Shown one piece after another: positions 17,541 through 19,148 of a stretch of 64,000 nucleotides of DNA (position 1 is its first letter; the number at the start of each line of letters is the position of its first letter). Made by a program: the position numbers and the translations under genes. The stretch lies in contig MU058244.1 in NCBI GenBank assembly GCA_013265495.1, positions 1-64,000 of the forward strand, in the 5' to 3' direction. Origin of the DNA: Vicugna vicugna. Its lineage: Eukaryota. The notes beneath the pieces are model-generated. The model did not search any database, had not been told where the DNA came from, and worked only from the letters and a program-made list of their open reading frames with translations.

Positions 17541-18976
17541 CACAGGCACGTGGGGGAGCACCGCCGTGAGGGAGCCGGTGCCGCCCGGTCGTGCCCGGTT
17601 GCCGGTTACCGTGACTGTTGGTGGGTCGTCACTGCCCCGCCCTGGACCCTGCACCCCTTGGAGAAAACCAGAGGGGACTCTCCGGGGGGTTCTCTGCCGT
17701 CCCTGCACCCCTGAAACTGGGCTTGCCGGCCTCTCCCAGGCGTCCCTCCACGGCCGAGGCGGAGCCAGGCGGTGCCCCCCTGCCCCGTGGGAAGGGCGGG
17801 TATCGTCCTGACTGCTGAGGGCCTTGCCGAGTGGAAGCTGCGTTTCTTCTCCCTGCACGCCCTGCAGCCCGACTCCCTTCCAGGAACTTGAGCGCACAGT
17901 CGGGCCAGGTCGGACAGCGGTGGAGGGTGGAGCCGTGCAGACACGCTGGGCTGGTAGGGGCTCTCGGGAACGGGCACACAGGCCCCAGGCCACTGGGCCA
18001 ACTGCCGACTCCCCTCCCTCGACACCTGGGCCAGTGCTCCCCACCCTCTCCCCCACAACACGCCGTTGTCACCTGCCTGGCGTTTCCGCAGATTGGCAGC
18101 TCTGTGCCTCAGTTATGATGGAGATAATGAGTCATTGAATTCAGTAAGAATTGCTTCCATGATTCACGCAATCCATTCTTCCCCGATGGGCACCCTTTTT
18201 GCCAATGGGAACTGTTCTTTAAGCTCATTGACACCCGAGGCAACACACAGCGCGTTGTGTTAACTTACAGTAACAGAACGTGCATAATGAACAATCTGCG
18301 CCATTCTTGCAGGATGCGGGCGTGCGCTCAATGCATAGCAGGGACACTGTGCGGGCGCCGCCCTCCCAGGCTGAAAGGGAATCTTGTCCGCGGCTCTGCC
18401 AGCCCTCGGCGCCTGCACTCCCGTTGACTTGGTGCTGTGGGGGAGCGGCCCGGAGACTCAGGAAGCTCAGCTCCTTCCGGGCCGCGGGGCCTGCGGGTGG
18501 AGGTGGGAGAGGGTCCCAGGCTGCTCCCACGGAGCCCTGAGTGGCAGGGACGGAAGGGACCAGAGTGGGCAGCACCTGTGAGGGGGTGGGGGCCAGGCCA
18601 TGGCGGCAGCGATGCCCTGAGGCAGTCACGTCCGGTTTACTTGGCGCAGTTAGGGAAACCCGGCCCAGACAGGCCAGCCAGCCTCCAGTGGCAGGGAATT
18701 GAGTCCGAGGCCGGCCTGGTAGGTGGCAAGACTCGCTGCCCCGTGAACCAGGAGCCGAGCGGTGCCTTCACCTCTGACCTGGCCGGTCTCATCGGCACCG
18801 ACAGCGGAGGGCCTATGCTCCGTGCTTGTCCAGGCCCAGCTCTGAGCAGGGCTGGCCAGACCAAGTTCCACCCATCAGCAAGGGGCAGGGGATGCGGGCA
18901 GGCCCCCCTCCCACCGAGGACACTGCAGGGGCTCTCAGTGCCGGTAGCCACATTGTGGCACCATGTTCTCCATAAT

Positions 18977-19148
18977 GCTGTTCCTCTGTCCCCAAAGGTG
19001 TATGTGGATGGAGGGCAGGTGACCCCAGGCCCCTGTGACGCTGTCCTCTGTCCCCGAAGGTGTATGTGAACGGAGAGTGGGTGACCCCAGGCCCCTGTGA
19101 CGCTGTCCTCTGTCCCCAAAGGTGTATGTGAATGGAGAGTGGGTGACC
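18977..19148 (+). repeat. 62-bp tandem repeat (about 2.8 copies) spanning the exon 7 acceptor
   Basis: Exon-like starts GTGTATGTG at 18998, 19060 and 19122, each preceded by cctctgtcccc(a/g)aag. Confidence 0.97.

Follow-up and report, generated by a model that had tools for sequence, protein, structure and literature searches.

A tandemly tripled acceptor at exon 7 of PRKAR1B in Vicugna vicugna, probably a set of pseudo splice sites left by slippage

The closest described relative of the locus reported here is the 37-bp minisatellite in intron 7 of human F7, whose repeated 5' pseudo-splice-sites are functional yet normally silent, the exon-adjacent site being the one used (Borensztajn et al. 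2006, PMC1557585). We analyzed a stretch of 64,000 nucleotides of Vicugna vicugna (contig MU058244.1 of assembly GCA_013265495.1, positions 1 to 64,000 of the forward strand; hereafter the window), in which the acceptor of exon 7 occurs three times in tandem in a gene that we identify as PRKAR1B, encoding the type I-beta regulatory subunit (RI-beta) of protein kinase A (PKA). As in F7, this is a natural tandem repeat of which one unit lies across an exon/intron boundary, and the authentic site stands beside identical or nearly identical copies of itself. However, the repeated element of F7 is the donor, downstream of the exon, whereas in PRKAR1B it is the acceptor, upstream of the exon, and each copy carries its own putative branch point and tract. 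The F7 repeat is a polymorphic human variable number tandem repeat of 5 to 9 copies, whereas PRKAR1B has 2 to 3 diverged copies, one of them common to old lineages. Finally, the silence of the pseudo-sites has been demonstrated in F7, while in PRKAR1B it is a presumption, based on the conserved reading frame that only 19121 keeps.

Other known systems share parts of this arrangement. Engineered acceptor duplications in globin genes (1983 studies, as cited in PMC1557585) also made two acceptors of the same local sequence compete for one donor, and raised the same problem of which one is selected. By that account, these were artificial constructs that gave conflicting results, whereas the PRKAR1B array is natural, lies within a 7.7-kb intron and includes 27 nt of exon in each decoy. 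Alternative 3' splice sites coupled to nonsense-mediated decay (NMD) resemble it in having an upstream AG with its own tract, an extension that is not a multiple of three and a stop more than 55 nt before the next junction, but the known regulatory cases are conserved in sequence and in outcome, and the PRKAR1B decoys in neither. Decoy exons (Parra et al. 2018, PMC6097662) are highly conserved cassettes with both splice sites, whose effect is the retention of an intron or the skipping of an exon. By analogy, intronic acceptor-like elements such as those of PRKAR1B could engage U2AF and U2 unproductively; unlike decoy exons, they are acceptor-only copies that drift at a neutral rate. The In100 element of caspase-2 is an example of a decoy 3' acceptor. 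Lastly, Hellsten et al. are said to have described in 2011 how new splice sites or introns can arise from tandem duplication. There too, a small genomic duplication with AG/GT (slashes mark splice junctions) copies splice signals, but the outcome is a new functional intron, whereas PRKAR1B has only extra upstream acceptor copies, at which the regenerated GAT/GTGTAT is a poor donor.

Our reading of the locus, to which we give a probability of about 0.65, is that the array is a genuine tandem multiplication of the junction between intron 6 and exon 7 of PRKAR1B, and that the decoys, pseudo-acceptors of neutral or slightly harmful effect, came about by slippage and persist as a drifting relic. 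Tandem Repeats Finder reports a period-62 array at positions 18977-19148, with 2.8 copies, 91% matches, no indels and a score of 293. Its unit consists of a polypyrimidine tract, an AG and the first 27 nt of PRKAR1B exon 7, three times over, with AG ends at 18997, 19059 and 19121. A 23-nt core that straddles the acceptor, CTCTGTCCCCAAAGGTGTATGTG (CTCTGTCCCCAAAG/GTGTATGTG), lies at 18984, 19046 and 19108 with 0, 1 and 0 mismatches, while the number of copies expected by chance is zero (100 dinucleotide-preserving shuffles of the window, up to 2 mismatches allowed). The recurrence of AG/GTGTATGTG three times at a period of 62 means that the unit spans the exon/intron boundary and reiterates the splice-site signal. 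Counted from the AG, the units 18998-19059 and 19060-19121 are identical at 56 of 62 positions. The 36 nt upstream of AG 19059 differ from those upstream of AG 19121 at the single position -4, and over the whole interval from -36 to +27 copy 2 departs from the authentic site only at -4 and +12. The 21 nt before 18977 appear to be a diverged remnant of the 5' part of a unit, so the array effectively holds three full units; the homology of this segment is weak and was drawn from comparison with a porpoise array (L001) and with a single-copy species, spG (L022), both introduced below.

Each copy has a candidate branch point whose sequence is plausible: ctgtgAc for acceptors 2 and 3, whose A (19038 and 19100, respectively) lies 21 nt from the AG, and cataAt for acceptor 1, whose A (18975) lies 22 nt from it. 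The authentic acceptor is itself an AAG preceded by a C-rich, T-poor tract (5 T in 17 nt). We rejected RNA structure as a means of masking the decoys, as the region 18950-19170 is no stabler than its shuffles (z +0.71) and shows no sequestering fold. A known RNA family within the array was rejected as well, the sole match being a chance-level small nucleolar RNA (15.7 bits against a gathering score of 42).

The gene was identified from two of its exons. Exon 7 matches residues 184-236 of RI-beta in the PDB chain 4DIN_B with 51 of 53 residues identical (E 8e-37), above every RI-alpha chain, and the last exon is also best matched by RI-beta (residues 325-380); since both are closer to 4DIN_B than to the RI-alpha chains, we take the gene to be PRKAR1B. 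The plus strand of the window carries exon 6, exon 7, later exons and the last exon, which ends at 44059, and the coding exons seen are all open and otherwise conserved. Two departures were noted. Residue 223 of RI-beta (19236-19238, within DLKVWG) is Val in the window and Leu (DLKLWG) in 106/106 other vertebrate exon 7 open reading frames (ORFs) retrieved, as it is in the solved human RI-beta. In the last exon (around 43904-43930), Ala replaces the conserved Pro of the site-B phosphate-binding cassette, which reads NRPRAAT in 4DIN_B and in all RI-alpha chains.

Only the acceptor ending at 19121 keeps the reading frame. Splicing to 18998 adds 124 nt and shifts the frame by +1, splicing to 19060 adds 62 nt and shifts it by +2, and each extension runs into a TGA (Table 1). 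By the usual rule, a stop triggers NMD if an exon junction follows it at a distance of more than 50-55 nt. For both stops the distance to the exon 7/8 junction exceeds 140 nt, and both decoy products should therefore be NMD targets. A sequence-only reading of the window had described most of these elements, and they hold: the 62-bp triplicated acceptor with its AG ends, the identity of PRKAR1B exon 7, the three acceptor-like sites, each with a branch-point-like motif, a tract and an AG, the third copy as the only one in frame, the two extensions with their stops, and the status of NMD target by rule. Both peptides that it quoted are exact.

Table 1. Features of the PRKAR1B exon 7 acceptor array in the window, followed by the homologous loci of other species.
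Feature	Position or source	Strand	Remarks
PRKAR1B exon 6 (GDEGDNFYVIDQGEVD)	11394..11440	+	phase 0 end; donor GAT/GTAAGT, partner for whichever acceptor is chosen
Diverged 5' part of first unit	18956..18976	+	putative remnant of ancestral intronic GTGACCCCAGGCCCC-GTGAC segment; carries the branch-point candidate of acceptor 1
Decoy acceptor 1	18977..18997	+	tract GCTGTTCCTCTGTCCCC, 14/17 pyrimidines, then AAAG
Copy 1 exon-like 27 nt (old decoy)	18998..19024	+	23/27 identical to real exon start; derived G10 and G17; camelid-specific CA at 19-20
Decoy acceptor 2	19025..19059	+	branch-point-like ctgtgAc, pyrimidine tract, GAAG; 35/36 identical to authentic acceptor upstream of AG
Copy 2 exon-like 27 nt (young decoy)	19060..19086	+	26/27 identical to real exon start; keeps ancestral AAC codon, AAT in real exon
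TGA for acceptor 1 use	19067..19069	+	211 nt upstream of exon 7 donor
Authentic acceptor	19087..19121	+	branch-point-like ctgtgAc, pyrimidine tract, AAAG
Authentic exon 7	19122..19280	+	159 nt; RI-beta residues 184-236, core of cyclic AMP-binding domain A including GELAL...PRAAT cassette; donor ATG/GTGAGT
TGA for acceptor 2 use	19129..19131	+	149 nt upstream of exon 7 donor
East Asian finless porpoise	L001-L006, at least 6 runs		three 63-nt units, AG in each
spB	L007		two units 60 nt apart; decoy AG now GG
spC	L008-11, L024-27, at least 8 runs or assemblies, some of them metagenome assemblies		decoy with intact CAG, 92 nt upstream
spD	L012-15		decoy with intact CAG and expanded 27-nt tract sub-repeat; 108 or 135 nt in two runs
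Second camelid	L017/L018		two copies; 96.2% identical to window over 3.47 kb of intron
spE, spF, spG	L016, L019-21, L022-23		single copy

To find relatives of the array, we used the ORF that extends from exon 7 into intron 7 as a query against the public protein collection and read the contigs of the matches as DNA. In some of the matches, the ORF also covers a second exon-like segment (VYV...), which lies upstream of the real exon. Homologous arrays were found in the East Asian finless porpoise, in a second camelid and in the species that we call spB, spC and spD, while spE, spF and spG have a single copy. The two groups are well separated by a self-similarity test, in which the upstream 215 nt were compared with the species' own real acceptor unit: z is 12-36 in the former and at most 1.6 in the latter. 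A decayed decoy that had been suspected by eye in spE was dropped (z -0.1). The porpoise runs SRR20997931 and SRR20997935 are PacBio HiFi runs of the finless porpoise genome paper (PMC9747978). The placement of spB to spG rests on a small tree of exon 7 and intron 7, in which the porpoise is joined with spC and spD (support 95/96) and spE and spF fall outside, the camelid, spB and spG being unresolved beside the clade of porpoise, spC and spD. Unit length takes values of 60, 62, 63, 92, 108 and 135 nt and, like copy number, drifts between and within lineages. In the two camelids, the copy number is 3 in the window and 2 in the relative. Since the copies of the window differ from one another and homologous arrays were independently assembled in many runs of other species, the array as a whole is unlikely to be an artefact.

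In spD, the contigs L012 and L013, from two sequencing runs, differ by one copy of a 27-nt sub-repeat, ggcccccgacactgtcccctgacccct, in the 110-140 nt upstream of exon 7. The resulting distances between decoy and exon, 108 nt and 135 nt, may reflect a copy-number polymorphism or a species difference. In the second camelid, copy 1 runs directly into ...GGGTGACCAGC, and this path from copy 1 to the real exon is unbranched in both L017 and L018, which argues for two copies at that locus. These contigs, from two runs, share their end point, 3 nt inside the part of exon 7 that is unique (...GTGACCAGC); a heterozygous site, a drop in coverage or a branch in the assembly graph could each produce such an end.

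The comparison between species gives an order of events. The decoys of both camelids, porpoise, spC and spD share the derived changes A10>G and A17>G, whereas every real exon has A at both positions. This points to one duplication before camelids split from cetacean and ruminant-like lineages, which would have left one decoy, the present copy 1 of the window. On this evidence, copy 1 is the old decoy, with an ortholog in the second camelid. The decoy of spB lacks both changes and may stem from a separate event or be a converted copy. Copy 2 has a different history. At positions 10 and 17 it is of the real type, the second camelid lacks it, and it keeps the AAC codon found in the real exon of the second camelid and of most other species, where the real exon of the window has AAT; it is thus a later, lineage-specific re-duplication of the authentic unit, with one change in each copy since. 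In the porpoise, both decoys share a further change, GTGGCC, so that its third copy arose separately, by duplication of the decoy. The comparison shows that copy number was altered independently in several lineages after the first duplication.

The sequence around the unit suggests how it may have been copied. The single-copy locus of spG and the first porpoise unit carry (c)tgtgacccc or gtaacccc...gtgac upstream of the tract, and the exon has GGGTGACCAG. Given these GTGACC repeats in intron and exon, the unit would be bounded by short direct repeats about 62 nt apart. More precisely, one GTGACC(CC)AG repeat would lie in the intron just upstream of the branch point and the other at exon +22 to +29, and their spacing would set the unit length. 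Short direct repeats are the classic substrate for slippage or unequal exchange.

We see no sign that the decoys, or the NMD outcome of their use, are maintained by selection; their divergence proceeds at the rate of the intron. The decoy region differs from that of the second camelid at 6 of 104 bases, compared with 3.8% in the flanking intron. Between a decoy and the real exon of its own genome, 3-7 of 27 positions differ. With intron divergence between the compared species at roughly 30% (about 70% identity), of which a single lineage accounts for its part, about 5 differences would be expected. The high sequence conservation expected of a decoy exon or decoy 3' acceptor is thus not seen, and three mammals have no decoy at all. 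The consequence of using a decoy also varies. It is a premature stop in the window (by TGA) and in spC (by frameshift), an in-frame insertion of 21 or 42 aa without stop in the porpoise, and an in-frame extension with a stop in spD, while in spB the AG is lost. The breaking of the frame is therefore not conserved.

How the authentic site might prevail can be framed in terms of general splicing rules. A 3' splice site is settled once U2AF and U2 have committed to a branch point and a tract, after which the first downstream AG is used. Each copy would by itself hold all the elements of a pseudo-acceptor, namely a GTGAC that resembles a branch point, a pyrimidine tract rich in C, and an AAG, and since the choice is made at commitment, the three sites would compete at that stage. 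The authentic site at 19121 would be favoured by exon definition and is the expected winner, because it alone has the rest of the exon behind it and is closest to the donor at 19281. Past +27, the decoys would instead enter another pyrimidine-rich, intron-like stretch. Copy 1, with its additional G-run (GAGGG), a feature that often has a silencing effect on exons, is expected to be the weakest, and copy 2 would be the likeliest source of leak. Any leak through 18997 or 19059 would carry the extensions and stops given above and go to NMD. The array would then cost at most some productive mRNA and be tolerated as a drifting relic rather than an evolved regulator.

Recursive splicing at AG/GTGTAT was considered and rejected, as the regenerated GAT/GTGTAT is a poor donor next to the authentic GAT/GTAAGT and ATG/GTGAGT; it mismatches the commonly given donor consensus at +4 and +5 and does not qualify as a recursive site. 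A 62-nt intron is too short, so re-splicing from AG/GTGTAT offers no rescue route. In copy 1, at 19016-19024 (GGGCAG/GTGACC), the camelid-specific CA change creates a weak donor-like CAG/GTGACC 21 nt past acceptor 1. As an observation on the sequence, its use together with acceptor 1 and the real acceptor would define an in-frame micro-exon of 21 nt, VYVDGGQ.

Several points weigh against our view of the array as a tolerated relic. We infer, rather than observe, that the decoys are silent or leaky and that any leak passes to NMD. Acceptors 2 and 3 are locally indistinguishable, and 19059 may be used substantially; MaxEnt-type scoring is blind to this choice, the sole difference among the bases that it scores being at -4. 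The early experiments with duplicated globin acceptors, as PMC1557585 cites them, disagreed on which copy is used, and set beside the silent F7 donors they leave room for either outcome as to the extent of leak in the array. Of the 7 decoys seen, 6 still have their AG, and several lineages re-amplified the array, which can be read as maintenance. Finally, the three-copy state of the window's own species was not seen in independent reads. No junction of exon 6 with a decoy occurs among the ORFs listed from the exon 7 protein search.

The alternative that survives best, unlikely as we hold it, is regulated unproductive splicing: the decoys would be used at a meaningful and regulated rate, their stop-bearing transcripts would go to NMD, and the dosage of RI-beta would be set in this way. 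In its favour are the complete set of acceptor signals in each decoy, stops that satisfy the 50-55-nt rule, an AG kept in most lineages and a copy 2 that equals the real site by local sequence. Yet porpoise decoys give in-frame products without stop and that of spB has lost its AG, the decoys are no better conserved than their surroundings, both copy number and unit length drift, and copy 2 is missing from a close camelid relative. The sequence-only reading had proposed that the repeat could tune RI-beta dosage by unproductive splicing, a suggestion that we find unsupported and that the comparison between species mildly contradicts, with an outcome that is not conserved and divergence at the intron's rate. 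Its companion suggestion, that the repeat could vary in copy number, stands as far as camelid lineages are compared with each other.

A broader form of selection is, in our view, quite unlikely: the pseudo-acceptors, older than the split of camelids and cetaceans and independently re-amplified in at least three lineages, would be a selectively kept feature of artiodactyl PRKAR1B that modulates the removal of intron 6 or the neuronal output of RI-beta. The intact AGs and repeated amplification noted above speak for it, and the intron-like divergence of the decoys speaks against it. If it were true, the young and nearly perfect copy 2 could mean a lineage-specific change of RI-beta dosage in llama/alpaca-type camelids.

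We are very doubtful that the decoys act without being spliced, their extra tracts and AGs binding U2AF and U2 without completing the reaction and altering the kinetics of intron 6 removal. Removal could either be slowed (intron retention, which has been proposed for decoy exons) or be helped by a higher local concentration of U2AF, given that the AAG acceptor is a weak one. U2AF-binding decoy exons with intron retention as their effect have been described (PMC6097662), the authentic tract is poor in T, and a decoy was kept or re-amplified in several lineages. However, the described decoy exons are highly conserved (PMC6097662) and those of PRKAR1B are not, and a single copy suffices in three mammals.

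It is likewise very unlikely that copy 2 is truly damaging, diverting a large share of transcripts in a lineage where constraint on RI-beta has been relaxed. The near-identity of copy 2 to the real acceptor would fit, as would the Val at residue 223 and the Ala in the site-B cassette, but the coding exons of the window are all open and otherwise conserved, and one substitution each in copy 2 and the real unit since their duplication suggests long persistence and not a fresh harmful allele.

Least credible of all is a third copy that exists only in the assembly, two haplotypes or a short tandem repeat having been wrongly put together: copies 2 and 3 are two bases apart and could be allelic, a close relative carries two copies, and no independent reads of the window's species turned up in the ORF searches or the scan of JGI contigs, but the assembler would have had to invent the GAGTGGGTGACC-CCAGGCCCC junction, and the repeat family is real in many species, including in HiFi data. 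More precisely, the copy-2 junction ...GAGTGGGTGACC/CCAGGCCCC is absent from the two-copy allele, whose only such junction is GCAGGTGACC. As for the searches, the exon 7 ORF protein search gave no ORF identical to that of the window, a search with a plus-strand ORF of 210 aa returned only the two-copy relative and one with a minus-strand ORF of 229 aa only one distant match, an exact look-up of two array-spanning minus-strand ORFs gave no match, and no exact copy of the copy-2 junction was present in the JGI metagenome contigs scanned.

The array belongs, as a new natural case, to a class already known, in which a tandem repeat that crosses an exon boundary gives rise to pseudo splice sites. 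What is unexpected is its evolutionary depth, together with a young and nearly perfect extra copy in the lineage of the window. As a mirror of the F7 donor minisatellite, it offers a natural competition at the acceptor end, with three near-identical acceptors for one donor, of which one yields a working RI-beta. Related species provide an allelic series that runs from one copy to three, with variants in and out of frame and a single decoy that lacks its AG; the series could be used to weigh exon definition against branch-point scanning, a question that the old globin experiments left unresolved. If the decoys are silent, the array is an evolutionary curiosity. There is also a risk for annotation, as splice-aware aligners and gene predictors may settle on a wrong copy and annotate a frameshift or an insertion of 21 aa that is not real.

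Well downstream of PRKAR1B, the very GC-rich 3' end of the window contains three runs of N, at 62804-62944, 63246-63377 and 63503-63666.

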